Program-made: the position numbers and the translations under genes
From: Dimorphilus gyrociliatus
Lineage: Eukaryota > Animalia > Annelida
Assembly: GCA_904063045.1 (NCBI GenBank)
Contig: CAJFCJ010000001.1
Coordinates: 1,488,001 to 1,552,000 of the forward strand
DNA: 64,000 nt
Reading direction: 5' to 3'
Shown here: piece by piece, positions 1 through 23,600 of the stretch
Position numbering within the stretch: the stretch's first letter is position 1
Layout of the letters: every line of letters starts with the position of its first letter
Notes under the pieces: generated by a model
What the model was told of the DNA's origin: nothing
The model's input: the letters and a program-made list of their open reading frames with translations, nothing else
Databases searched by the model: none

Positions 1-3000
1 ATCCTTCACTGGGGTTCTGCTTTTTCTTTGCAATCTCAATGTGGCTGGTATAGCGCCGTACGTATATTAATCTATTTTCACTCTCATTAACTTAAAATAT
101 TCCCGTGAAAGGGACGTATTGTTTCAGACTATTGTAAATAGTTTTTCAATTAACACAAAAAATGACAATAATATGAAATTTAATACGCAATTATATAAAA
201 AAAAAACACTATTGCATTTTCTTTTTTTTGTACTTGTTTCCTAGGAAATATGTCATCGTTACACCAGAAAAAATTCGACCTGGTCAACCACTTGATATCT
301 ATTTCGAAATTGAAAATGATGGAGAGAATTTCCCGACTTCGGCAGCAATTGTATTCTCACTTGAGGGAACCAACTATATGGGAAGGGAGAGAAAAGAAAC
401 TGTAATCTTGTCCAAAAAGTTTGACATGGATATTACAAAACCTAACATTGTCTTTTTGGACATTCCATTCGATATTGACCAAAGCTTTGCCTATTCACTC
501 AACTTAAAAGCTGATGGGGAAATTCGTTATGGTACTTCGATTGCTAAGTAAGACTAATTCCTTTTCCATAAGAAATTTATTAAATCTTCTTCTTTTCAAG
601 ATTTAAAAACTCAACAAAAATTAATTTTGACAAGAAGAGTATGTCGATATTTATCCAAACCGATAAATCTATGTATAAACCAGGCCAGATGGGTAATACT
701 CTTTAAACTATTTCCTGTCTTTCTTACTAATCATTTGTTCTTGAAAAGTTAATTTCAGAGTTATTTCTGTTTATCCCGATTTGAAGCCTTTTGATAAACT
801 GCTGAATATCGAGATTTTTGTAAGTAACTTAATCATCACTCTATAAAAATCATTTATTTAATACATATTTGATTCTCAAAGGATCCGAGGAATAATAAAA
901 TTGTACAAAAATTCAACGCTACACAAGAATTCAAAGGCGTTGTAAGTGACAATCTACAATTAAGCGATCAACCTATTGAAGGTACTTGGAAAATCACAGC
1001 TCAATATGGTGTAAGTGTAATAGTCTAAGATTTGGATCACTATGAATAAATCTTTTTTATTTAGACTGAAAAAGTCGAAAAAACCTTTATAGTTGAAGAA
1101 TACGTTTTACCCAAATTCGAAGTGAAAATTAAATCGCCAAGTTACATTGTTTATGATGATAAAAAAAATAAGTTGGCACCAATTACGGAAGATATTCATT
1201 TTACAACTGAAGTTTTGTATGTATATCTGTTTTGGAAAAATATTTTTGCTATCTTATCGTTAATCTTAGGTATACTCATGGTAAACCTGTGGAAGGTTCG
1301 GTCGTCGTTGATATTACGATGTACAAATACTGTTCATACAGATGTCCCAAATACAAAACAATCCAGAAATCTGGCCAAGTGAGTTTTAATTTGAAAGAAA
1401 TACAAAAAAAATGATTAGATTTTTATCACTCGTTTCCTGTTTTAGTTAAACAAACTAACTGGTCGTGCTGATTTTACCTTGTCATCTGAGGATATTTTAT
1501 CCATGACGTCAACAAGAGAAAGATGGAGATGGGAGAAACTAGAAATTCAATTCAATGCGAGAGCCACAGAGACTGTTAGTGGTATTACGTTAAATGGTAC
1601 TGGAAAAACTACCGTACGTTTGGAATCTTTTACAACAGAGTTTTTGAGTTCAACGCCTGAAAACTATAAACTCGGCTTGCTCTACACTGGCTTTGTGAGT
1701 TGTTGATTACTTTTAGTAAGCCTGATCATTTAGTTTTGTTATATTTTAGTGGAAAGTTACCCAAATCGATGGTTCCCCAATTACTGAAGAGCAGTTGAAA
1801 AATGAGAAAGGAGATGATGAAGTTTTATCTGTTGAAATTGGATACATCGTAAGAATAGAATTCGTAATTAGAATCATATAATAATTTTTAAAAATTCTTA
1901 GTGGCAGTATAATAAAACCATCAATGGTCGTATCGTTACTCAAAGGTAAATAAATATATGAAGGAAATACGATAATAATGATTGTTTTTAATTCAATATG
2001 TAAAAACAGTGGAACTGAAGAAAAAAGAGTAAAAACTTTCCCAATTCCTAAATCTGGTCTTGTATTTGTTACTTTTACCCCACCCAAAAGTAATATAATC
2101 AGAGATATGTGGTTTGATACGATAAAACTTATGGTAAGTCAAATTAAAACATGTCACTATGATAAATATTCTTTGATAATGATGTTTGCTTTCAAAGGCC
2201 ACATTTAAAACTAAACGAACCTACAAAAGTCTTAGCCAATTTGTTACTAAGAAAACTAAAGTTGGATTGCAAATGACTGTGCAGAACGATGGAGGAATAA
2301 ATGTAAGTGTATTAAATGAATATACCAAACTTTTCAATAACACAAACGCAATACTTTTACACAGCCTGATGAAGAATTGAAAGTACTTATGACTACTACA
2401 GTTGCTATTCCTAGTTTTACATATATCGTTAGTATAATTTTATAATAGAGATTTTGTTAATAAGATTTTTTATCGTGTTTGTTCCCAGCTCATATCTCGC
2501 GGTCGTCTTATTTTCAACGGTGAAGTATCTATGGATGGACTATTAGAAAGAGAATTTTCGATTTTCATTTCGAAGGATATATCGCGAAAAATTGCTCCTT
2601 CGGCTAGATTATTAAGCTTTTATAAGTCAGTGGAGAACGAAATGGTTGCTGATAGTATTGAATTCAACGTTAATGGCTTATTCTCTAATGACGTCAAAAT
2701 ATCCTTCAATAAAGATCAAGTTTCTCCCGGTGAGAACATAGACCTCAATATTCAAGCATCGCCTCATTCATTTTTGGGATTATTGGCTGTCGATACGTCT
2801 GTTCTATTGTTAGGTGGTGGAAATGATTTGGAAAGTAAAGATGTTATGACGGAGGTTAAGAAGTATGACTCAAGCAGTCATAATTACTTTCCATATGAAC
2901 GTAGGTTTAGAAGGAAGAGATCAATCATGCCGTGGCCAATGAGATGGGGAGCCCAAGATACAAGTGCAGTGCTAACTAATGCTGGAGTTCGTATGATGAC

Positions 3001-4482
3001 TGATGCTCTTATCTACAAGAAAATTATTTATCGTGAGTTTTTCTAATTTATTCCTTTATAGTCCATCTTAAGTGAAACTATAAGACAACTGAAGCTTAAC
3101 GATTTCCAATGTTACCAAAATTGCTCTTTCGACATTTTGCGCTTCCAAAGAGTATGAATGAAAGATTAAACATAAGTTATTTAGGTTATCCAGAATACTT
3201 TCCTGGAATGCCCGGCGTTCCTGGAATGGCTGGATCTGGCCCACGTGGGCAAGAAGGACAGCCTGGCCCTCCTACTGATAACGATGGGGTGAAAAGAACT
3301 CCTGAAACTGATGTTGATACAGGCTCAGTCTCTGTGAGAAAACTTTTCCCCGAGACCTGGTTGTACTTCAATAAGGCTGTAGGGTAAACTGTCTTTTTTA
3401 AATATACTTTGCTTTCTTCTCCATTTCTACTGCCATTTCTAGTTACTTCAGCAGTCTGTCTTTTTTTAACACCTCCAATTCTTTATGAAAAAGCAAATTT
3501 TCCGAAACTTCATTCTTTCCTATTCTAAGGTGCGATTTTTTTTGACTAAATCTCACCTTTATCTGAAATATTTAAGGGATATGTTAGCTTGATGAATCCA
3601 ATTGAATGTATTCCTGTGTGTTCTGACTTATGGATCATCATTCTACTAATTTTGATACATGGTTGTCTAAAGTCCCACAAAAATAAAGAAGCTATTTAAA
3701 TTTCCATGTAGATCCCTATCCCGAAGCGATTGATGATATAGCATTTGACTTCGGATCTACTAATAGACATGAAAAATTTCCCGCGAGTACTCCCTCTGAT
3801 AATCCTGTGAGAAAAAATTTCCCAGAAACATGGATGTACTCAAATTTAATGATGGGGTATAGAAAGTATTCTTCGACACTAGTTAGTTTCCTGTAGATAG
3901 TAGTTTATTTGCAATTCCCTAAGGTTGATAATTTTTGCCAGACAATTCATTGTCACTTGTAAATAACAAGCCATTCAAAACACTGATTTTAATGAAGTAG
4001 AAAAACAATTCAACAGATTTTTTCATGATAATCTTTCAGAACTTCAAATAATAATGGCGCAAGAAAGTAGACATTTTAATATTGTAGCCCCAAATTCAAA
4101 CAAGGCACATGATAAAAGTCCCAAAAGACGTATATTTCCAGAAACCTGGCTTTGGGAAAGCTATATTTTACGGTAAAGCTTTTAGGATAGAAATCAAAAT
4201 GATGACATTTTAAAACTAATATGATAAGATAGATAAGTTATTATATATTAGCTTCTTGGCTAATTTACCACTTCTAAACATTATTTTGAAAGAGTTAAAC
4301 TGTTCTTGAAGTAATTTTAGTTAAAATAATGGTCTAACGATATACAGGTGGAAAAATGCAGGCAATGAAATTTTCAAAAAATATTATGAAAAAACAGTCG
4401 CAAACTTTTCTCAGTAAAAAAATTGATAGAACTCATTTTCCTGAAATTTGGTTTTGGATAAACAAACTTATTGGGTAAAATA

Positions 4483-4516
<34 letters not shown>

Positions 4517-7500
4517 TTAAATCGTTTAACCGAATTGTTCATGTATTATTTGTAAAAAGCTTAAAAATAGTAGGGAAAAGAGCTGCATGAGCCGAGCCGT
4601 CTAACGTTGTTTATATTTTGCTTTTACTGGAAAACATTTGTTTTTACAGTATTAAAAGAGTAATTTATGATTATTAGCGAAACTTAAGGTATAAATATTA
4701 AAACAGCGGAAATGTTTGCTTTCTCTAACAATATGGCTAGAGGAGGTGGTGGAATTCAAACAATGGGAATAAAAAAAAACATGAGATCAAAGTCAAAATC
4801 TGCAGAAGGAGAGTCAGATACATCCGAAAGCATCGAGGAACCGTCAAGTGTAAGGAGACTATTTCCTGAGACTTGGCTTTGGTTCGAAAAAAATATAGGG
4901 TAGGAAAATGTCACCTGAAAAGTAGCACTTGTTTTAGAATCAAAAAATCACTTTTACCCCTAGAACTGTCTCTCTGCTTTTTTATGTCTAGTGAACATTC
5001 CAAGGGTCGAAAAATTTTTAAAGTAGATATTAGAGTCTATCCTTTTTTTTAAAACTTGTTACAGATAGGAAACGATTATTGTTCTCGAAAGATGGGAGAG
5101 CGAAATATAAAAATGTACTTCACCAAAAACCACAAGAGAGTAATTCTCTCTCCAAAAAGAAAGTTACTGTCAGAAAAAATTTTCCAGAAACGTGGCTTTG
5201 GAATCAATACATTATTGGGTGAATTTGAAATTTTTATTAGGAATTCCCCTAGACCCTGACGGAATGATTTAATTTATATACTTATTTTATTTGTTTGCAA
5301 ATGGCAAAAATTTCAATTTTTAGGAGATAAATATTTAGCTATTGTGGAATGTTTCCTAGCGCTCATAATTTGTTGTTGTCGTTGTTGTACGGAGACGCAT
5401 GTTAGTAATTTTTTGAACGAAGCATGGTACCAAATTCATCAATCAATCAATTTGTACCATTTTTAATTTTTTTTTTAATTTGTAGCAAAATCAATAATTA
5501 TATGAATCTAAATTATACATTTTCTTAACAAGTAACGCCTAATATCGATTGATGGTTGCTTGAAATGCTTTTAGAGCTTACACTTCATCTATTACCTTGT
5601 TACCTATTAACTCTCTTCATTTGTAGAAATAATATAATATTTATCTGAAATTATTTTACAGCCCCGATGGCAGGATGATTATCAACGCTGTAGTTCCTGA
5701 TACCATTACTTCTTGGGTTGCAACAGCATTCGCTATGAGTGAAACAGATGGTTTAGGAGTTGCAGAAGAGGGAGCAAAAGTAACAGTTTTCAAATCCTTC
5801 TTTATTCAATTGAGTCTTCCATATTCTGTTATCCGTGGTGAAGAATTTAAACTAAAAGTATTAGTCTTTAACTATGAAAGTACGCAAAAGACGGTAAAAA
5901 TTCATTTGAAAATCCCTCCTAATACATTCGTCGCGAGAACTGGTGAAAAGCTTGAGAAGGAAATATCAAACGCTTGGGCCTCCAAGACTGTTACTGTTGA
6001 ACCAAATTCTTCAAAGAGTGTAAACTTTTGGATCGAACCTAAAGCTTTGGGAAATATACCTTTGCTGGTTATGGCAAGAGGCCATCTTGTTGCTGATGCA
6101 ATTGAGAGGAATTTATTAGTTGAAGCTGAAGGTTCCCCAGAAGAATATTCAAAGTCTACATTTCTTCGTCTATCAAAAGACGGTGACAGTTCGACCAGCG
6201 CTAAATTTCATGTCGCCCTTCCGCCTCCATCTGTTCTTGTAAACGATTCTCAATATATATCAGTTACCGTTATTGGAGATATTATGGGTAAATCAATGAA
6301 CTCGCTAGAATCTCTTATAAGAATGCCTTATGGATGTGGAGAACAGAACATGATCAACTTTGTTCCAAACATTGTGGCTATGGACTACATGACTGCTTCT
6401 GGTCAGGTAACTGAATCAATCAAGAAAAAAGCCATTAAATATATGACGGCAGGCTATCAAAGAGAATTAACCTATCAGAGAGACGACGGATCTTTCTCAG
6501 CCTTTGGAAACAGAGACAAGAGTGGCTCACTTTGGCTGACAGATTATGTTACGAAATCTTTCATTGCTGCCTCCAAATACATATTCGTAGATCAGAAGAT
6601 TATTGCTAATTCTATACAATTTATCATGGGGCTTCAAGATAAAGACGGAAAATTTGCTGAACCTAAAGATGGTAGGGTTATACATGCTGGAATGCAAGGT
6701 GGTACATCAAAAGGTATCACTCTAACCGCCTACACTCTTGCTACATTGATTGAAGCTAGTAGAGTAGTTGATAAATCCAAAAATTTGATCGAGGTAATAG
6801 ACACCTCGCTAAAGTATCTTGACAATAATGCGCAGGAATACTACCAAGATCCATATGCTTTAGCTGTTCTCAGCTATACTTATCAACTTGCTGATCTATA
6901 TCATAATTCCTATAAATCAACTAAAGCTGATGACGTTTGGAATAATTTACAAAAACTAGCCAATGAAGAAGAAGGCATGAAATGGTGGAAGACCGTCAAA
7001 AAGGAGGTAAAATGCCCCAGAAGTTGGTGCTCTTCATATAACACTGCTAAAGCTTCCGATGTTGAGTTAGCAGCGTATGCCTTGCTTGTCTACTCTTTGA
7101 AAACTCAATACAAAGATGATATTGATTCTACTCTTCCAGTTTTACGATGGATGCTTTCGCAGACGAATGAAAAGGGAGCTTTCAAGAGTACTCAAGATAC
7201 TGTTGTTGGCTTGTCAGCTTTGGCTAAATATTCCAGTGTAGTTTTGGCTGGAAACGAGAAGAATATGAAAATAAAACTCTCTTACGGAGAAAGTTCTCAC
7301 AACTTCAATCTGATAGCTATGCACAATGCTACAATTTTACAACAAACCGTTGTACCTAAAGACACACAAACAATTTCCGTGGAGGCCACTGGATATGGTA
7401 CTGCTGTTGTCCAAATGAATGTTAACTATAACATTAAAGACACGGAAGGCGAACCACCCAAACTTCACTCAACTCTTAAACAAATGCATTCACCAAAAGG

Positions 7501-8091
7501 CGTTCAATTAAAATCTTGTGTTAAGTTCTCTGCTGAAAATGGAGAAGAAAGTGGCATGGTTGTTACCGAGCTGAATGTTCTTAGCGGTCATTTTGTGGAT
7601 ACCTCAGAATTGTTACAAGAATATGGAACAAGAGGCTTGAAACGAGTAGAAAGTGTTGGAAAGAAAGTCAACATGTATTGGGATGGATTCTCCGATAGAG
7701 AAGAATGCTTCGAGTTGTTCGTTCAAAGAAAAGATCCAGTAGTAAATGTTCAACCTGCTGAAATTGCTCACTACGTATACTATGATGTCGAAGAAAGATC
7801 AAGTCATATGTACTCATCTGACAGAAAAGGCTTTGTTTTAAATTTTCATGAAGCAAGATTAGCTGCCTGTAATGACTGTGGCATTGGTATGTATATCAAC
7901 TTCAATGTTATAGAAATTTAATATATCTTTTTTTACATTTTTAAAATTTTCCAGAATACGTTTCGAATCTTAAAGAATCTAACGATCAGGGTCAGGAAAT
8001 ACCTATTTTCCCAATTGGTAGTTCTTCCTCTTCTTTAAGATTTGGATTGTGGATTGCTATATTATCTCTTTCTACAATATTTCTTCTTTAA
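1..8091 (+). CDS. CD109: Thioester-containing protein (TEP/CD109-like, alpha-2-macroglobulin family), probably GPI-anchored; multi-exon, 5'-partial
   Basis: Signal-peptide-like first exon (SFTGVLLFLCNLNVAGIAP, donor at 58). SIFIQTDKSMYKPGQ and EEYVLPKFEV MG-domain motifs; RRFRRKR furin-type site near 2900; FPETW after the variable region; PYGCGEQNM thioester; GRVIHAGMQGG catalytic His; STQDTVVGL. Long exon 5662-7886. Last exon 7955-8091 ends GSSSSSLRFGLWIAILSLSTIFLL*, a GPI-signal-like tail. Confidence 0.9.
3118..3132 (+). promoter_or_regulatory. Candidate upstream docking site for TEP cassette selection (AAATTGCTCTTTCGA)
   Basis: Hand-derived complementarity to sequences upstream of cassettes A (3147-3154), B (3685-3697), D (4286-4295), E (4655-4666; 12/12 pairs including one G-U) and F (4919-4927). 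Confidence 0.45.
3185..3383 (+). CDS. TEP variable cassette exon A (Gly/Pro-rich, Gly-X-Y-like bait)
   Basis: ttAG|gt..gg|GTaaac, 199 nt; YPEYFPGMPGVPGMAGSGPRGQEGQPGPP...VRKLFPETWLYFNKAVG. Confidence 0.85.
3712..3856 (+). CDS. TEP variable cassette exon B
   Basis: tgtAG|at..gg|GTatag, 145 nt, open; PYPEAIDDIAFDFGSTNRHEKFPASTPSDNPVRKNFPETWMYSNLMMG. Confidence 0.85.
4040..4172 (+). CDS. TEP variable cassette exon C
   Basis: tttcAG|aa..cg|GTaaag, 133 nt; LQIIMAQESRHFNIVAPNSNKAHDKSPKRRIFPETWLWESYILR. An alternative in-frame acceptor near 3970 is possible. Confidence 0.8.
4348..4474 (+). CDS. TEP variable cassette exon D
   Basis: tacAG|gt..gg|GTaaaa, 127 nt; GKMQAMKFSKNIMKKQSQTFLSKKIDRTHFPEIWFWINKLIG. 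Confidence 0.8.
4485..4514. repeat. (AT)15 microsatellite in the intron after cassette D
   Basis: Read directly from the sequence. Confidence 0.95.
4707..4899 (+). CDS. TEP variable cassette exon E
   Basis: aacAG|cg..gg|GTagga, 193 nt; EMFAFSNNMARGGGGIQTMGIKKNMRSKSKSAEGESDTSESIEEPSSVRRLFPETWLWFEKNIG. Confidence 0.85.
5065..5218 (+). CDS. TEP variable cassette exon F
   Basis: ttacAG|at..gg|GTgaat, 154 nt; RKRLLFSKDGRAKYKNVLHQKPQESNSLSKKKVTVRKNFPETWLWNQYIIG. Confidence 0.85.
5345..5359 (+). promoter_or_regulatory. Candidate downstream docking site for TEP cassette selection (TGGAATGTTTCCTAG)
   Basis: Complementary to CTAGTGAACATTCCA (4988-5002, 14/15 pairs including one G-U) after cassette E. 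Weaker matches after B (3860-3872), D (4627-4639) and F (5238-5247). Confidence 0.45.
6332..6346 (+). other. Thioester motif GCGEQ
   Basis: gga tgt gga gaa cag within the large TEP exon. Confidence 0.97.
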
Positions 8092-8767
8092 ACTTTTTTA
8101 AATATATCTACATTTGCTTAAAATCACATGTTTATCAAAGTCTCCTTTGTGTAGAGTATTTAATAAAAAAGTTTGGTATGAATTTGTTCTTATTTTGAAT
8201 TTAGCTAAAAAATTAATATAGTTTCTATATTAACAAACAAGTGAAATTTTTGTTGCCTATGTTTTTTGACTAAATTTAATGGTTCAGTGTTTAAATTTTA
8301 ATTTGAAAATGTATAGTAACAGTACACCGTATATATATATTAGTAATATTAGTATATTATTAAATACTTTCACCAGACAGTGACGTCGTAGAGAACTACG
8401 ATAATTTTTCAACAAGAGCTTTATTATTATAGAAATATAGAATATAATACATTTAAAAATCAGTCTCTATGCGAATACTAGAAAAATGAAATCGGTAGTA
8501 CAAAATCAAATAAGTGAATATAACGTAAAATTTTGAAATCTTCAATTTCTAACTTTTTAAAAAGTTAGTTTATCATAATCATTTTGGAAATATGATTTAT
8601 TTCTAATAAAAAAAGACATTTTTAAGTCTGTCAACAAAAGTTTAATTAATTAAAAAGTATATATTCTATAAAAAGAATTGCCAAACCCACGGATTTTGTA
8701 TTCCAATAAAAACTGGTATATTTGAACTGTTGTGTTTCGTAACTTAACTGCGGAGTCGGCATAAAGA

Positions 8768-11277
8768 ATGGAGGCACGCAAGAAAATATCCGAAATACTT
8801 TCCTCGTTTACACAGGAACAAAATGTGTACGTAAGCATTGTTTTTTCTTGTTATAAACTTTATTTAATAAGGAAAGGTTTAAATTTTTGTCATTATATTT
8901 AAGTATTATACATTACGATTTAAGAATCTTCTTCCATTATCGTTAATAGATCTAAGAAACCGAACGCAATCTCTCAAGAGTTTGTTCAGACGGACTTTAT
9001 TGATTTCAAAAAACGAGTTTTAACTTTTGATGTAAGTATTTAACTATTAAATAAAGATAATGCATCCCAAAAATTTTTTAGCCCTCAGTTTGGTATGGAA
9101 AGCCAATGTGGTTGAATCCATTGCAGCTAGCTCGATTTGGATGGACAATGGTCAGTCATAATTTACTTAAGTGCTCGTTTTGTAGTGCTTATGCCGGTAC
9201 GGATCTACCATTACCAACAAACAAAGCAGTTTGTAAGTTTTTAACAGGTTAAGATTATAGCATTTTAAAACAACTTCACCCGTTAGATGACAATTGCGTG
9301 GAAAGACTGAAAAAATCGTTACTTTTAAATCACAATTCCCTGTGTAGTATAAGAAGCCGTCCCTGTTCTGGTAAGCTATCAAGTTTTATGAGAGTAAACG
9401 AATACATTTAAAGAATTTTAGAATCTTATTTGACATTGGATTGGGAAAGTGTTCAAGAAGCACGAGATTATTTATTAGAAAGAGTAACCGCGACACTAGA
9501 AGTTGGTTATAATCTTCCGAGAGTTAGCGAAGAAATTTTGATGAAATTAGTAAGTATTTGTTTGAGTATGCTTATGACATACTAATATAATCATACATAA
9601 TAGGGTCTTAATGAAGAAAACTTTAAAACAATGAAGAAGATCTTTGAGAAAGATTTACCAAATAATTCTGACATGGATGTTATTAAATGTGCTGTTTCTC
9701 TGTCTCTTTGTGGTTGGGTAATTAGGTAAGTAGATAATATGAGTTTTTTATCTATTTATATTTATTTACATTCCAGAAAAGTTGCCAAGAACATTGAAAT
9801 TTATTGTAATATGTGCAATAGACAAGTTGCACTTCGACAATATTATACACTTCAAGATGAACCTAGACCAATTGGAGAAAATGAAGACTCTGTAATAGGA
9901 AGCTCAGAAATAGCTAGCTTTGAAACTAAACGGTCAGATGTCGCTGTCCAAACAACTACACTTGAATTTGAACATGAAGAAGTTCAAACAGAAGTTGATA
10001 GTAATGGTGAGTGTTTGAATATTGAATAATATTAAAAATAATATTAAATAAATTTTATAAAAATGTTCAATATTTTTAGCTTGGAAGAAAATGCTAGCTA
10101 GGAAGAATTCATATGATTCCGAAGACTCGTCAACTGGCTTATTTAGCTCAAACTGTCGACCTTTTTCACCCCGACATGTACCTACAAAAAATGGTGTCTT
10201 TGGAAATCAAAGTGCTCCCCAATCCAATATTTTCTACTCATCAACCTCTTATAATACCAGCAGATCAAGTTCAGCATTGGAAGTACTCCACGAAGTTGCT
10301 ACTGAAGAAGAGAGCGTTTCGGCTATGAGAGAAGAGAGCGTTTCAACTGTAAGAGATGACAGTAACTCAAATTCTACTGAAGAACAAAGGGAAAAAGAAG
10401 AAAAAAATGATTCTAATACTAAATTTGATCTTCATACTATTCTTGAAGAGAGTCAGGACGAAAATTGTCAAGAGGAATCTGAAAACGAAGACTCACCTGT
10501 CAGCAAATTAGAAAAAAATGTTAATTTTCAAGCAGTATTAGATACTGAAGAAACAGAAGAATATCCCACAATTTGTTTTGAACAAAGTAAGGGTGATGAC
10601 GATAGTGGAAGTGATGAGTATGAAGAATATGTTGGAGAATATGAATCCCTTTCGAATGAAGATGATATCGAGGATATGACTGAAAATGATACAAACTACG
10701 AAGTAATAGCTGTTTCAACTACAAGTGAAAGTGATATGGAAAATGAGAGAAATAGTGCACTGGAAAGTGGCCAGGACGAATTGGATGCCGATTTCTATGA
10801 AGATGACGATTCCAACTCAAGCGAACCGAATATCCCTCAGGTTGATGGCTCAACAGAACTTAACAAAAGAAAGAGAACTTTGAGTAGCGAATCGAACTTT
10901 TCTTTTAAAAGACAAAGAACTCAAATGACAGTAAGTTTTTTAAAAAAAGTTACAATTTTATTTAAACTGCTAAAATCTTTATTTCCAATTTTAGAACAAA
11001 TTACACTTTCATCCAGCAAATGAACATAGAAGATGGTGTCCCTGGATTCACTCTCACGTTGCTAATAGTCAAGAAGGATATAAAGGATTTTTGTTCGCAG
11101 TTCTAGATGAAGTACCTCCTGGAGGCGTTAGAAAATTTCCAATGTTTGCTGAGGTAAATAATTCCTTATAACATTTTTTTCCCAATAAATGCTAATTTCT
11201 GCTTCTTGCAGCCAACTGGAGATAATGTAAAGAAAGTAAAACGCCTCTTAAAAGAATGGGCAGCGCCTATAGAATAA
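8768..11277 (+). CDS. ZC3HC1: NIPA/ZC3HC1-like C3HC zinc-finger protein (Rsm1-like), multi-exon
   Basis: Spliced reading gives WYGKPMWLNPLQLARFGW, LKCSFC...HNSLC (C3HC), SLCGW..YCNMCNRQV, an NLS-like KRKRTLSS, and FHPANEHRRWCPWI, matching the NIPA family layout. Confidence 0.85.
10307..10354 (+). repeat. Imperfect 24-bp coding tandem duplication (EESVSAMR/EESVSTVR)
   Basis: gaagagagcgtttcggctatgaga gaagagagcgtttcaactgtaaga. Confidence 0.9.
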
Positions 11278-16992: not shown

Positions 16993-17694
16993 CTTTTTAG
17001 TAGTTTTGAATTGTTTCTCTTCTATTTTTTTGTTTATTAATAATTATTTAGTTAAAAGATTTTTAAAGATGGCGGAATCGAAAAAGGAAAAAACAAGAGA
17101 GAGAAGTTAACTTAGTAAATCTTTTACAATTATTGCAAATTTTAGCGGATATTAAATAAAGTTTGAGCGAATAGTACTACTACCTTTCTGTTACTGGTTA
17201 ACAATTTCGTATTATCAGATATATATATCATCTTATCTAACGTTTTTTTTCGAAATTTGATATACATATAATTAATAGTAATTTTATGCAAATTAGGTAA
17301 TGTTTTTATAGATTTTAGAATACGTCTTGCACTTTATATGTTCAATTGTTCTAGAATATTCCACTGAACTGGTTATACATATAGTGCATATTTATAAGTA
17401 TATTAAAGTAACTGTAGATGGCGTTACATCTTTATTTCGAATGTTCTATTAAGAGAATTGATTTGATTAAAGGGAAGAAATAATAAATCAAGTATTCTAT
17501 GACGATAGGAAAAATTCGGCTGTATTAAAGTTTTTTGGTTGTCTTTTTTATCTTTTAAATTTGTTTGTAAAGTTTATCATAGACTGTACTCATACAAAAA
17601 GAATGTTCGTTTTTAAAGAAAAGTCTTGACGAGGGCCGAACTAGCACCAATTAAAAACTACCGAATAAGGGTCGGGAGGGAACACAATTAGAAC

Positions 17695-20600
17695 CTAACA
17701 GTCAGTATCTTCTGCATAAACACCTTGTGGTGCTTTGGCTTTTAGAGTAACTCTTCTTTGTCTTTGCTCTTGTACGCTTGCGTAATCTGTGTAGGTAGGT
17801 GTTGTTCTTGGCTTCCAAACTGGTGAACCGAGAGTATCGGTAGTCTTTGGCGTTGCTTTCTTTACGGGTCTGTGACTGGAGTACATTAATCGGGCTGAGC
17901 TATCACTATCACTTGCGGCAGATCTTTCTTCCATATCCAACGATCTGGACATATCAAATCTAGCTACTGTCTTTCTCTTTGACGATAATGAGTCTGGACG
18001 TCTAGTTGAAGGTACTGACATCCTTTTGACGCTATCTCGTATAGTATTTCTAATAGTTTTGAGAAATTCGGCTTTCGCATTTAAAGAGCTTGCGAATTCG
18101 TATCGTTTTTCTGGTCGTCCTTCCTGTTCGGATCTGCAATGGACGGCCGTCCATAGACCGTGCCTTTCCGTATCACCCACTCCTGTTGCTCTCACTTGCA
18201 GTTCTTCGACTGGTATGGCTGTACGAAATTTAACAATCTCCATACCTTCGGTCCCCGGACCTGGTGGAGGTTGTTGTCTTGATTTTGGTGAACGCTTCCT
18301 CTGCGTCCTCTCTTGGCACAATAGAACGAGAGCTTGCTTAAAGACGAAAACGATATTTAAAAGATCAGTTCCTTTCTTCACTTTTCTAACGTCCTCCAAT
18401 GCGTTTAGCCAATTAACATTGCCGTACATATGCAAATCAGCAATATTCAAATCCAACTTATATTCCTTAACTAGGGAATCAAATACGCAACCATATTCTT
18501 CGTGAATTTTCTGCATTTCGTTTATATGTTCAGCTACTGCCTGCATGCACCTTAAAGCTTCGTCTAGATGTTGAAATTCTTCCGAATTCGGTCTTGTTAG
18601 CGCACGTAATTCGGATAACAAAAGAGGATATTTCAATATCCTTTGAATTGGCTTTATTAGGAATGATTCCAGTGTAGAGGAGTGCTGCTGTTTAGGATTA
18701 CGAGCACGAAGGAAATCGGCTAGGCGGGGATTCGAATCAGGCTGCAGGATCTTTTGAGCTTTTGAATGGCTAGCGCAGAAACTAGAGTAGAGCTTGAAAT
18801 GGTTGGCATGATATAAAAATGTTCCGGCTAAAGATAGCAAGAGTTTCTGTATAGATAAATAAAGAAGAATATTTTTTTAATCAACTGAAAAAAGGAGAAG
18901 CGAATCTCAAACAAAAAATAAATAGATAAACAAACAAATTAGTCAATAATGCATCCAAAATTCTTGTTTATACAATTAACGGTGAATAAACAATTGAAAC
19001 ATCATAAATCTCTCTTTTAAACGAAATAACGAAAACAAAAAAATAATAGAGGCTTTCTGTGATAATGAAAACAAAACAGGATGGAGTGGAATAGTGGAGT
19101 GGAGAGGAGGGGAAATAATTTAGATAGAGATAGAGAGAGAAAGAGAGAGAGAGAGAGATAGAATGAAAGAATGAGATTAAAGATAAAATAGATAATTAAA
19201 ACATTTATTGGTATACTAATATTAAACTTTTCTCCGAGAAATTGACTCACCTTCAATTGCTCTTCCTGTGATTTACGTGAAATGTTTTGGTGAAATGAAA
19301 CGGGTGAAAGGAAAAGGAAAAATTAGGAAAAATGTTAGGAAAAAGTGTGTAAATTTAATTGAAAAAAACACGATAAAATCGATAAAAATGGATGTTTTAA
19401 AGAAGTTTGGAAAATACAAAAAAAAGTGAAAAATAATTGAATAGAATAAAAAATATTCTTACCTTAAATTGGACGCCATCTTGAAAAATATCAAAATTTT
19501 GCTCTAATCTGACACCCTCTTCTAAAGCATTTAAGAAAATCTTTTGAAAAGATACAATCTCTCTAATATTACCAAATAACTGTTCAACATCTTCACTTGT
19601 TAAGAATGTCTCGTCCTTTAATGGTTCCAAGTATCTCTCAATCAGGCAATTCAAATCTCTGACGTACAATCTCTCAGTCGAAATTAACTCTTTAACAACT
19701 TTACGAAGTCGGTCCCCTTCCGTTAATTGTTTACCGTTCGAATCGTCGGATGGAACACCACCATCGATTTCGACTCTTTCGCCGTGTTTGGAATGCAACA
19801 GTCGACAGAAATGAGTTACTTGTTCGGCTCCTTGAAGAAGTGAATCAACAGACGCACCTTCAGGCGTTTTTTGCACATCTGAGCCCTTTTTTGATTCGGG
19901 GGCTGGTAAGATTAGCTCACCAAGCTCCCTTTCAGAAATGATAGATTGATAGGGTGGGGGAGGTATGACTATTTGTTCGATAAATGCTGCCGATTGTTGT
20001 TGTTGAGCGTTAATTGAAGCAGGAAGGTCAGTTCGGCAAGAACGGATAGTCAAGGAAATTTTACATTCTGCGTTGAGTATGTTCTCGACATAAACCATGT
20101 CGAGTTTAGCAATGATCCTACCATTTAAAACGAGAATTTCGTCACCAACCAACAGCCCTTTACGACCAGCTACACCTGTTCGGGAAATTTCAGAGATGAA
20201 TACGCGCAACTCGTCATCTGTCTCGTCGGCTAATTCTGCTTCAACATTCATTCCGAAGTCACCCTCCTTCTCAGTGTGGAAGAGGTCTATTTGAAAAATG
20301 AGCTTTTGGCAGACTTGCATAGATTCTATAGATTCTAGATCGAGAACGTTTTGCCTATCGAGCGTAACTTCGCTACCGGATATAGTTATAACTTTTACAA
20401 AGTGTTCTGTAGGATCTAGTTGTCTTCTTGAGCAGATAGCATCGAGTAACTCTCCTATGGTTGTTCGTTCACCCACTGTTGCTAGTATATATTGATCACC
20501 CGGAATTCCAACTCTAAGTTCGCTTTTCACCGAGATCTCACTATCTGGACTTTGGGTTTCTTCCTGCATCCTTCTAGACAGATCGACGACGTATTCCTCG

Positions 20601-23600
20601 TCATCCATTTGTCTAGGTGACCTTGGTCGGATTCGAGAGGTGACATCAGATTTAAAAGTCGATAGTAAACCCCCTTTCCTCTGCAAATTAAGTGTGGCAG
20701 CAGTGGCAGGTGCCCTAGCGCACACTAAAGCGTGCAATGTACTGACTGTACATATGCCTAATCGCAGAAGCGCTGTCTTTGTAGGTTTCGATACCGAAGA
20801 CAACAAGTTTTTAGGATTTGGGAGTTCATTTCCGTGAAGTGAAGCAATATAACATTTAAGCCTATATTGTTCCATATACAATTTCTCCAGATCTTCGTCC
20901 CACTGGGCAATTTGTCTTTCTATAGCAGATCTCGTTTTCGTATCAGCTACCGACTCCAATTTCATATCTGCCATTTTTTTCATTTTTATATCAATTTCAA
21001 TAGAACTTTCTAATTTTTGTATCTCGGATTTCAATAGTTTTAGAGTATTTTCTTTCCCATGCTGCCTTGCTAAACAGGAAGCACAGGCTGAGTGTAATGC
21101 ACATATCCAATTTTCTTGTTCTACTTGGGACGTGGCTTGAAAGAGATAAGCATCCCCAAATGCAGTAGTCAAAGCAATGATATTTTCCCTTTTCGGATGC
21201 TCTGGTACTGGTTGAGACATTCCACTTTCAATAATTATAACATATTTCGGGTTAGTTTCGTCAGGATCGTTCATGAATAGTAAGGCTGTTCCTTTAAGGC
21301 AAACCCAATACTTCTTCCAAACTCTTTTTCTTGCTAGTTCAACTCTCCTCTTTTTATGTATTAACCAATTTTTGGCGTGTAGCCAACCCGCTTTTCGGAC
21401 AGCGGCACTCTTTGAGCTCCACATGGCCGCTTGTTCTGCCGGAAGTGTATTTAAACTTCCACTATCTGATGTATTTGTAGCACTACCATCTTCAGATTCG
21501 GATAATTCGGTTGTATCGGAACCGCTACCGAAATGTTTTGAGCTAACTGATGACCTTTGCATCTGTCGACTGCTTCGTCTGGAATTTTCCCTGTAGGGAG
21601 AAAGTGATTTAGATAATAATAAACTTTCGAAAAAGACGATTATGCTTACTTGTGCTTTTCGGGGGCTTTGGGAGGTCTACCATCGCCGTTTTGATTTTCA
21701 TTATTTTCGTCCAAAGTCCTAAGCATTCTTTTCAACGTTGCAGAGTCGAAGCTATCTACTGGTGGTGACGTAAGATGGTCTTCAATAGGTTCTGGAGGTG
21801 GAGGCCATTCTATTTCAGATGAAGAAACACTTTTACTCTTCCTAACAGAGTTAGGAGCTGGTGCAGGTGGCGGTTCCGCTTCAACGTCCAATGCTGAAAA
21901 TTTTCGTTCGGCAGCAGTAGAGTATGGATCTTCCTCTTCTTCAGGTTCGGTTTCCGCAACTCTTTCCCTAGAGCCGTATATCCTTTCAGCTTCGATTGTA
22001 TCCCGATTCTGATAGGCGTCTACAGCTCCGGAAGCGGACGAAAATTGTTTTGGTAGAGTTTGTGCACCCGACGGATGAGGCGATCTTTTAATGGAAGTAG
22101 CGTTTTGATGATTGATTGGAACGTGCTTGTGTTGGACCCTATGCTCAATTTGATCGTAACAGCCGTTAGCGTGATTGGATGATAATTCTTCGGGTGTTGA
22201 TATTGCCCTTCGAGGTTTGGAAACTGGAGAGGCCGGTTCAGAATTGGATTTATTTACCGTATTGGATCCTCTAACCCTCTGTTTAATATCGTATGTCAAC
22301 AATTAACAATACTTAAACTCAAAGAGTCTTACTTTTGGTGGGCTAAGTCGTAATGAGCCAGACGATGAAGCCTTTCGAGAAAGACGATTAGTCGAACTCT
22401 GTAATATTGGTATATATTTCATTTATTAATCATTTAATTAGGTTATGTTAATTAAATATTGAAAATTGTTAAATGAATACAATATACGAAAGGCGTTTCT
22501 TTTTTTTTGTCTGGCATTTACTCTCCTTCCATATCTTGAATTGAGCCTACATAGTAATAGTAGGTCTTAAATAGGAATTGACCTACTTTTTAATCCATCC
22601 TATAAAGACTAATATTTCGGCGGCTCAATAATGGAATTATTGAGTTAAATTCGCCATTGGCAATAACCCATACAAATTTACTTGATAAACGACTAAAAAC
22701 CGGATTTAGCGTACTCCTTCCGTAAGAAAAAAATTATATTACACTAACCGATATAAATAGGCTTAAATCATACAAATTAAATCCAATGCAAAAAAGCGAC
22801 AGAGAAAAAGAGAGAGAGAGAGAGAGAAAAAAAAAAGGAAAAATATTAGGGATAGGTCAAAGAAAGATTATAAGGATATTGTTCCATCTTAATGCTAATC
22901 CTAGTAATTTTACATCAAATTTCATTGAAGAAGAGAGATTGAGAAAAAAGGCGTAAATAAATGGATTTCCTCTATAAATTTCCTTCTAAATTATCTTATA
23001 TTTGTCCCATCGCCTTTCAGTTTATTATAACTAATATAGAAATTAAAGATGAATTTATAACCTTATAAAGGAAATAAATAATCAATATATTTGACAGGAA
23101 TATCCCTATCGGATCGAGGAATAAGCTTAAAGGTAAATCACATTTTCTCCCTCCTGCTCCTAATGCAAACAGAGATGTTTTCATTTTCCGACACCGAATA
23201 CTAAAACATTTACATTTTACTCAATGCGGTTAATAGTATAAACAATAATAACAATAATAAGAATTATTAATATTAAGGGTGAAATAATTGAAGATTTAAA
23301 AGACATTATATTAGAAATAAATAGCGTTCAAGTGTCATTGTATTATATTACGTAAAGTACAAATTTACTATAGTTGAGTAGGTAAAATACTAAATCTACC
23401 GCCTTTATTTACATTATAAAGCAAGTATGTAAAAATACTGTAAATATTATAATAATAGATAAAGAAAAAAAAAATAATCATTACCGCAATCATTTCTGCC
23501 TAAGAGACGCCTATAAATATTTGGTTACCAGAGAAACGAGATAGACCAAGCTGTAGAAACCTTTTAAAAGATGATATATATTTTCCACTCTTTTCCTATG

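Follow-up and report, generated by a model that had tools for sequence, protein, structure and literature searches.

A CD109-like thioester protein gene of the annelid Dimorphilus gyrociliatus with six candidate alternative bait-region exons

The window analysed here is a stretch of 64,000 nucleotides from the genome of the annelid Dimorphilus gyrociliatus (GenBank assembly GCA_904063045.1, contig CAJFCJ010000001.1, positions 1,488,001 to 1,552,000 of the forward strand); all coordinates below are window positions unless another locus is named. A gene on the plus strand spans approximately 173 to 8091. It encodes a CD109-like, probably glycosylphosphatidylinositol (GPI)-anchored, thioester-containing member of the A2M/TEP family, and its middle part carries six short candidate exons, here called cassettes A to F. 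Pfam detects the complete domain set of the A2M/TEP superfamily, namely the bait-region (A2M_BRD, PF07703, 1.2e-19), A2M (PF00207, 8.7e-27), thioester (TED, PF07678, 6.4e-89) and receptor-binding (A2M_recep, PF07677, 2.4e-14) domains, and the N-terminal macroglobulin exons are matched by homologues in tblastn searches. The thioester motif GCGEQ is intact, and appears as PYGCGEQNM in the translation of the open reading frame at 5675-7921. Among proteins of known structure, the gene product is most similar to CD109 (8s3o, 1e-127), followed by A2M (6e-95), mosquito TEP1 (3e-70) and C3 (about 1e-53), and among named database entries, annelid 'CD109 antigen' proteins come closest, with about 40% identity. 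The placement in the CD109 subfamily follows this ranking and the named matches, not a phylogenetic tree. The last exon (7955..8091, plus strand) encodes a serine run and then the hydrophobic tail GSSSSSLRFGLWIAILSLSTIFLL, which is directly followed by the stop codon. Judged by eye, this succession of small residues and a hydrophobic stretch is of the GPI-attachment type, and the term GPI-anchored TEP, used for the gene in a first-pass annotation of the sequence, appears to be a fair description.

Two constitutive exons flank the cassettes. The upstream one (2489..3032, plus strand) encodes the end of the bait-region domain and aligns with CD109 residues 545-641. Its acceptor at 2489 is marked by a contig of X4, one of four sequencing runs (X1 to X4) considered further below; the 1,729 preceding letters of this contig fall outside the compared stretch. 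The exon ends in phase 1 at the donor ATC/GTGAGT (the slash marks the border), and three RNA junctions start from 3032, so that the upstream border, first placed at 3031, had to be moved by one nucleotide. The downstream border at 5662 was placed correctly. There, the large constitutive exon (5662..7886, plus strand) begins in phase 2 and runs uninterrupted to 7886. According to Pfam and the match to CD109 (8s3o), its product comprises the remainder of the A2M domain, together with the GCGEQ-bearing thioester domain and the receptor-binding domain. Its end is derived from a junction listed as 7885>7954 ('cut +1') in X1, X3 and X4, which corresponds to true borders at 7886 and 7955. The last intron thus measures 68 nt, and its spliced form is present in three runs. 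In the D. gyrociliatus genome, the large exon has a single match with 100% identity. The next paralogues are only 25-28% identical, and these matches also lie in long uninterrupted frames.

The six cassettes are located between these two exons, in a gap of 2.6 kb, of which the array itself takes up only 2.0 kb. All are on the plus strand, and the introns around them measure 152-443 nt. Cassette A (3185..3383, 199 nt) has an acidic, glycine- and proline-rich variable part with collagen-like G-x-y triplets, and ends in the tail RKLFPETWLYFNKAV. Cassette B (3712..3856, 145 nt) combines an acidic variable part with the tail RKNFPETWMYSNLMM. The variable parts of cassettes C (4040..4172, 133 nt; tail RRIFPETWLWESYIL, with R instead of G as the junction codon) and D (4348..4474, 127 nt; tail RTHFPEIWFWINKLI) are basic. 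In cassette E (4707..4899, 193 nt; tail RRLFPETWLWFEKNI), the variable part is first glycine-rich and then rich in serine, glutamate and lysine. Cassette F (5065..5218, 154 nt; tail RKNFPETWLWNQYII) has a strongly basic variable part, with lysine or arginine in 11 of 35 positions.

The cassette borders were found by walking outward from each FPE[T/I]W motif to the nearest in-phase splice sites. All six cassettes have an AG acceptor and a GT donor, a length of 3n+1, a start in phase 1, an end in phase 2 and an open frame; the chance of an open frame is 0.005-0.035 per cassette at the GC content of 31.8%. Each ends in R-x-x-FPE[T/I]W-x-[WY], followed by G or R at the junction codon. When the entire 64-kb window was scanned in six frames for FPE[TIVSA]W, exactly six matches were obtained, all on the plus strand and all within 3185-5218. 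Independently, a repeat search grouped the 3' ends of the six cassettes into one family of 52-nt copies that are 62-71% identical to the reference copy. The N-terminal variable parts are mutually unrelated, with pairwise identities at noise level. The coordinates, lengths, splice sites, phases and tail motif given in the first-pass annotation were therefore recovered by motif scan and splice-site walk, and its statement that the N-terminal parts are unrelated also holds. When single cassettes were submitted to Pfam, only a sub-threshold Collagen match for cassette A was obtained (E-value 0.015). A Chlam_PMP match of cassette E is considered spurious.

With respect to the protein, the cassettes lie exactly at the bait or hypervariable position, as had been proposed. 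The alignment of the bait-region-domain exon with CD109 stops at residue 641, about 50 residues before the end of the exon, and that of the large exon begins at CD109 residue 732; the cassette fills the gap. The conserved cassette tail matches the segment VRKYFPETWIW of A2M (PDB 6tav), which directly follows the bait region. The tail of cassette F aligns with ETVRKYFPETWIWDLVV of human A2M (residues 729-745) and also with RSEFPESWLWN of C3, the start of the alpha' chain. The E-values of both alignments are weak because the query is short, and the position is exactly right. Moreover, the Pfam A2M match in the large exon starts at position 18 of the 92 profile positions, consistent with a cassette tail that supplies the first 17. 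In C3 and A2M structures, the strand formed by this tail is where the macroglobulin domain picks up again after the inserted bait or anaphylatoxin. By this comparison, the conserved motif is a structural plug, and the segment ahead of it the variable bait.

The lengths and phases impose a frame rule. The upstream exon leaves over one nucleotide and the exon at 5662 requires two, and the frame is restored by a single cassette (or, formally, by four). With zero or three cassettes, translation runs into a stop after 4 codons of the exon at 5662, and with two cassettes after 12 codons, in agreement with the expectation that inclusion of none or two would shift the frame. In addition, every cassette contains stops when it is read in the second position. 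As all cassettes measure 3n+1 and the flanking phases are 1 and 2, only mRNAs with a single cassette keep the frame. Those with none or several are expected to be non-productive. The last exon junction follows their stops at a distance of more than 2 kb, which makes decay of such transcripts by the nonsense-mediated pathway plausible.

A similar arrangement is found in another species. The best database match to the large exon, P0001, is 71% identical and stems from a 51-kb genomic contig (L001). Between the exon with the bait-region domain and the large exon, L001 contains four cassettes, all of 3n+1 length and with AG and GT splice sites. Their order is that of cassettes A, B, E and F, with which they form pairs of reciprocal best matches: A' at L001 8392-8578, B' at 8817-8961 (with the same length as B), E' at 9278-9464 and F' at 9595-9742. 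The variable parts of orthologous cassettes are about 30% identical, compared with 71% for the constitutive exon. Such low identity would be the expected behaviour of a hypervariable bait. The spacing between B' and E' in L001 is only 316 nt.

Other CD109-like loci that were inspected have fewer cassettes. There is one each in the annelids Helobdella and Paralvinella and in the bryozoan Watersipora, and possibly two in the annelid Lamellibrachia. The Lamellibrachia satsuma CD109 locus (L008) has FPETWLW segments at 17388 and 17540, 152 nt apart, and is a candidate two-cassette array, identified by motif only. In view of these lower numbers, the array of D. gyrociliatus looks like a lineage-specific expansion, and bait-exon arrays may have expanded independently in different lineages.

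Evidence for the use of the cassettes comes from contigs assembled from the four runs. X4 contains exact GT..AG junctions, and therefore contains spliced RNA; its contigs are continuous over the exons. In this run, the donor at 3032 is joined to the acceptors of A (3032>3185), B (3032>3712) and F (3032>5065), and the exon at 5662 is joined to the donors of A (3383>5662), E (4899>5662) and F (5218>5662). The E junction is also present in X2 and X3, both of which are metatranscriptomes; it is thus found in three studies, where the shorter side of the junction covers up to 115 nt. Junctions on both sides are available for A and F only. On this evidence, we count at least four cassettes as used, A and F with both sides, B and E with one side each. 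Neither a cassette-to-cassette junction nor a 3032>5662 skip junction is listed for the contigs of the four runs, which cannot show absence. The depth of a contig is a mean over the whole contig, and was not used to rank the use of cassettes or to call C and D silent.

In the marine metatranscriptome X3, a variant of the gene was observed that is 90-97% identical to the window (4750-4898) and also splices E to 5662, which points to a sister population or species that shares this cassette. Its differences are 2 synonymous and 3 non-synonymous in cassette E, and 19 and 11 in that part of the large exon which is listed; the number of sites is too small to test for selection.

Taken together, we consider it highly probable that a single gene encodes a CD109-like thioester protein, and that its bait segment is drawn from six tandemly duplicated exons, with one used per mRNA. 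Several observations weigh against this reading. Contigs show presence, but neither absence nor exclusivity within a molecule. The library type of X4, where 32 of 38 contigs are at least 99% alike to the window, is unrecorded, and the run is treated as RNA on account of its junctions. Among the contigs of the four runs, B has no donor-side junction and E no acceptor-side junction, and X4 contigs continue across the B donor and the E acceptor without interruption. We cannot explain the latter except by the tendency of contigs to drop weaker branches. For C and D, no junction at all was found in the contigs of the four runs, and neither cassette has a counterpart in L001, the sole close relative compared.

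The one-sided junctions of B and E could also originate from a single aberrant transcript that keeps 3712-4899 unspliced, in which case only A and F would be true single-cassette isoforms. The X4 contigs that are continuous over 3712-4474 and 4525-4898 fit this explanation, as does the missing B-donor or E-acceptor junction in the list. However, an RNA that retains 3712-4899 would have stops right after B, and its frame would read MMGYRKYSST... to a stop, whereas B' and E' are conserved in L001 as distinct exons, each of 3n+1 length and with splice sites of its own. The other introns of the array are covered by contigs as well, so that unspliced RNA or DNA must be present. This points to a general background in X4, in which contigs cannot show the absence of a junction. 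We therefore regard the aberrant transcript as very improbable.

A different concern is that only A, B, E and F work, and that C and D go unused, being either duplicates too young to have been recruited yet or decaying pseudo-exons, so that the gene would make four isoforms. This would agree with the lack of C or D junctions in all four runs, and with the unspliced contigs that cross C and D (in the case of C, contigs of both X1 and X4). L001 has exactly A', B', E' and F', with its 316 nt between B' and E'. A protein database search with the C peptide gave no match either, a weak blank, since no database protein was obtained even for the unspliced X4 contig in which C lies; short frames such as that of C are probably not called in protein databases. 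The end of a contig at 4474 must be disregarded here. A (TA)n microsatellite at 4476-4524, between D and E, is skipped in read matching and breaks contigs, so that this end is no evidence for use of the D donor.

Nevertheless, C and D keep all features of a usable cassette. Their variable parts have fully diverged, yet the open frame (with a chance of about 0.03 for each), the 3n+1 length, the AG and GT sites and the 15-residue tail have been retained, which points to maintenance by selection. Contigs drop rare variants. Furthermore, in the scallop some isoforms are found only in one sex or after challenge, according to work cited in PMC7016707, and for such conditional exons absence from a few bulk samples is expected. 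On balance, it appears rather unlikely that C and D are dead copies. Of the six-isoform repertoire that had been proposed at the outset, the part that concerns A, B, E and F is borne out by junctions, and the part that concerns C and D, which have neither a junction nor an orthologue in L001, is not.

An artefact of the assembly, with alleles or paralogues collapsed into an array, is barely conceivable. No evidence in its favour was found, apart from the general consideration that this is a long-read assembly with possible homopolymer errors. Independent X4 contigs follow the window without differences over 3354-3741, 3712-4474, 4525-4898 and 5189-5598. A second species has the same layout, and the large exon has its single perfect match in the genome, with the next paralogue at 25%.

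If six exons are indeed used one at a time, each cassette would supply a variable stretch of 26-50 residues with a chemistry of its own: collagen-like and acidic for A, acidic for B, glycine-rich and serine-, glutamate- and lysine-rich for E, and basic for C, D and F. Each would also supply the conserved tail of 15 residues (RxxFPETWxW...), with which the macroglobulin fold starts again. With variable stretch and tail in the same exon, any cassette could be plugged in without disturbing the scaffold. Only single-cassette mRNAs would stay in frame, and other combinations would meet a stop almost immediately. The result would be a small repertoire of protease-sensitive or target-recognition variants of one thioester protein, by analogy with fly Tep2, scallop CfTEP, and snail TEP2 and CD109. 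The family to which the gene belongs likewise suggests a role in immunity or as a protease trap.

Precedents for alternative variable exons, for which the first-pass annotation had pointed to Drosophila Tep2 and a scallop TEP, do exist. In the snail Biomphalaria glabrata, BgTEP2 has 12 mutually exclusive bait exons, each with conserved C-terminal residues. BgCD109 has alternative bait exons with 8 predicted isoforms, of which 4 were recovered, and BgA2M also has alternative bait exons (PMC7016707). Reports cited there describe six exclusive exons in scallop CfTEP, a fly Tep2 with five isoforms and a shrimp A2M with six variants. The worm gene resembles BgCD109 and BgTEP2, which are also lophotrochozoan TEP/CD109 genes, with a variable N-terminal part and a few conserved C-terminal residues in each alternative exon, and one such exon per transcript. 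In contrast to the molluscan BgTEP2, whose array extends over 30 kb, the annelid array packs six cassettes into its 2.0 kb, in a compact, intron-poor gene. Chlamys farreri CfTEP, with six exclusive exons and seven isoforms (Zhang et al. 2009, as cited in PMC7016707), has the same number of exons at the same place of a TEP. In the cited account, the use of its isoforms was measured by sex and pathogen, whereas the worm exons are known from junctions in bulk RNA contigs only.

The worm gene also shares an alternative exon for the hypervariable region with an insect-type TEP/CD109 relative, an arthropod secreted protein without a GPI tail. Human CD109 (8s3o) and alpha-2-macroglobulin (6tav) have the same domain order and an intact thioester, and the C-terminus of the worm protein, judged by eye, is of the GPI type, as in CD109. 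To our knowledge, the vertebrate CD109 and A2M genes have a single bait exon and no array of exclusive exons. A full-text literature search returned no report of alternatively spliced thioester proteins in annelids, and the D. gyrociliatus genome paper does not mention thioester proteins (PMC7854359). The design is thus established in molluscs and arthropods. The worm locus adds a further phylum, with partial RNA support, and does not introduce a new principle.

In clusters of the Dscam or 14-3-3zeta type, exclusive exons are selected by RNA pairing between docking and selector elements. The worm array resembles these clusters in that one of several tandem homologous exons is chosen, but differs from them in that a simple, non-exhaustive test gave no sign of docking or selector elements. 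At an E-value below 0.01, the introns of the array share no conserved element with L001, and only the exon tails match. The inverted repeats in the array are exclusively AT-rich. When the best windows of the first and last introns were paired with the five inter-cassette introns, their mean duplex energy was no better than that of dinucleotide shuffles, 16 of 28 and 12 of 28 of which reached it. One pairing window at about 3121 is marginal (reached by 1 of 28 shuffles), in a secondary statistic. Known cases of steric exclusion depend on very short exon spacing, and the introns of the array, at 152-443 nt, are longer. The frame rule is the sole feature shown to enforce the use of a single cassette.

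In a wider and more speculative view, which we put forward only tentatively, the locus would be the first exclusive-exon bait array described from an annelid, specific to its lineage and still changing, with four cassettes in the relative and six here. C and D would then be recent cassettes, used conditionally according to sex, stage or infection, and A a conserved bait that mimics collagen and is directed at collagenase-type proteases. If this is true, a 2.6-kb array in a 78-Mb genome would be the most compact natural system for bait-exon choice without detectable docking and selector pairing. Independently of this wider view, the locus indicates, together with the fly, scallop and snail examples, that animals without antibodies have repeatedly diversified a single thioester protein by duplication of bait exons and exclusive splicing. 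That the array persists in a genome from which most other introns of the gene have disappeared speaks for selection on it. The difference between four and six cassettes in related species offers a handle on array growth, and the locus is small enough to be cloned as a whole in a minigene.

Some further features of the gene deserve comment. Its 3' half (741 codons, comprising the A2M, thioester and receptor-binding domains) is a single exon, and the homologues in Paralvinella and Lamellibrachia span at least 30 kb. Introns therefore appear to have been lost in this gene while the cassette array stayed. For the D. gyrociliatus genome as a whole, a size of about 78 Mb, a median intron length of 66 bp and intron loss have been described (PMC7854359).

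A multibasic RRFRRKRS sequence is found at approximately 2900-2923 in the exon with the bait-region domain, about 36 residues ahead of the cassette, and L001 has FRKKRS at the same place (within 7767-8294). We take it to resemble a furin-type site upstream of the bait, which would be placed like the cut between the beta and alpha chains of C3; in human CD109, the furin site is C-terminal instead. At the start of the gene (173-260), the sole nearby ATG (173; MKFNTQLYKKK...) is shifted by one nucleotide relative to the frame of the first macroglobulin exon (...HYCIFFFLYLFPRKYVIVTPEKIRPG). Between the two there are 11 consecutive A, and one base fewer would produce a normal signal peptide. A homopolymer error in the long-read assembly, or a small unseen intron, may account for the break.

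Outside the gene, a 310-aa open frame at 10091-11023 on the plus strand is extremely rich in serine, glutamate and aspartate, acidic and of low complexity. It is located downstream of the zf-C3HC-like neighbour that is seen in the locus of the relative (L001). On the minus strand, at 17695-21562, there are two very long open frames of 381 and 721 aa, which, judged by eye, resemble a large signalling protein of the guanine-exchange-factor type with PH- and PDZ-like stretches.

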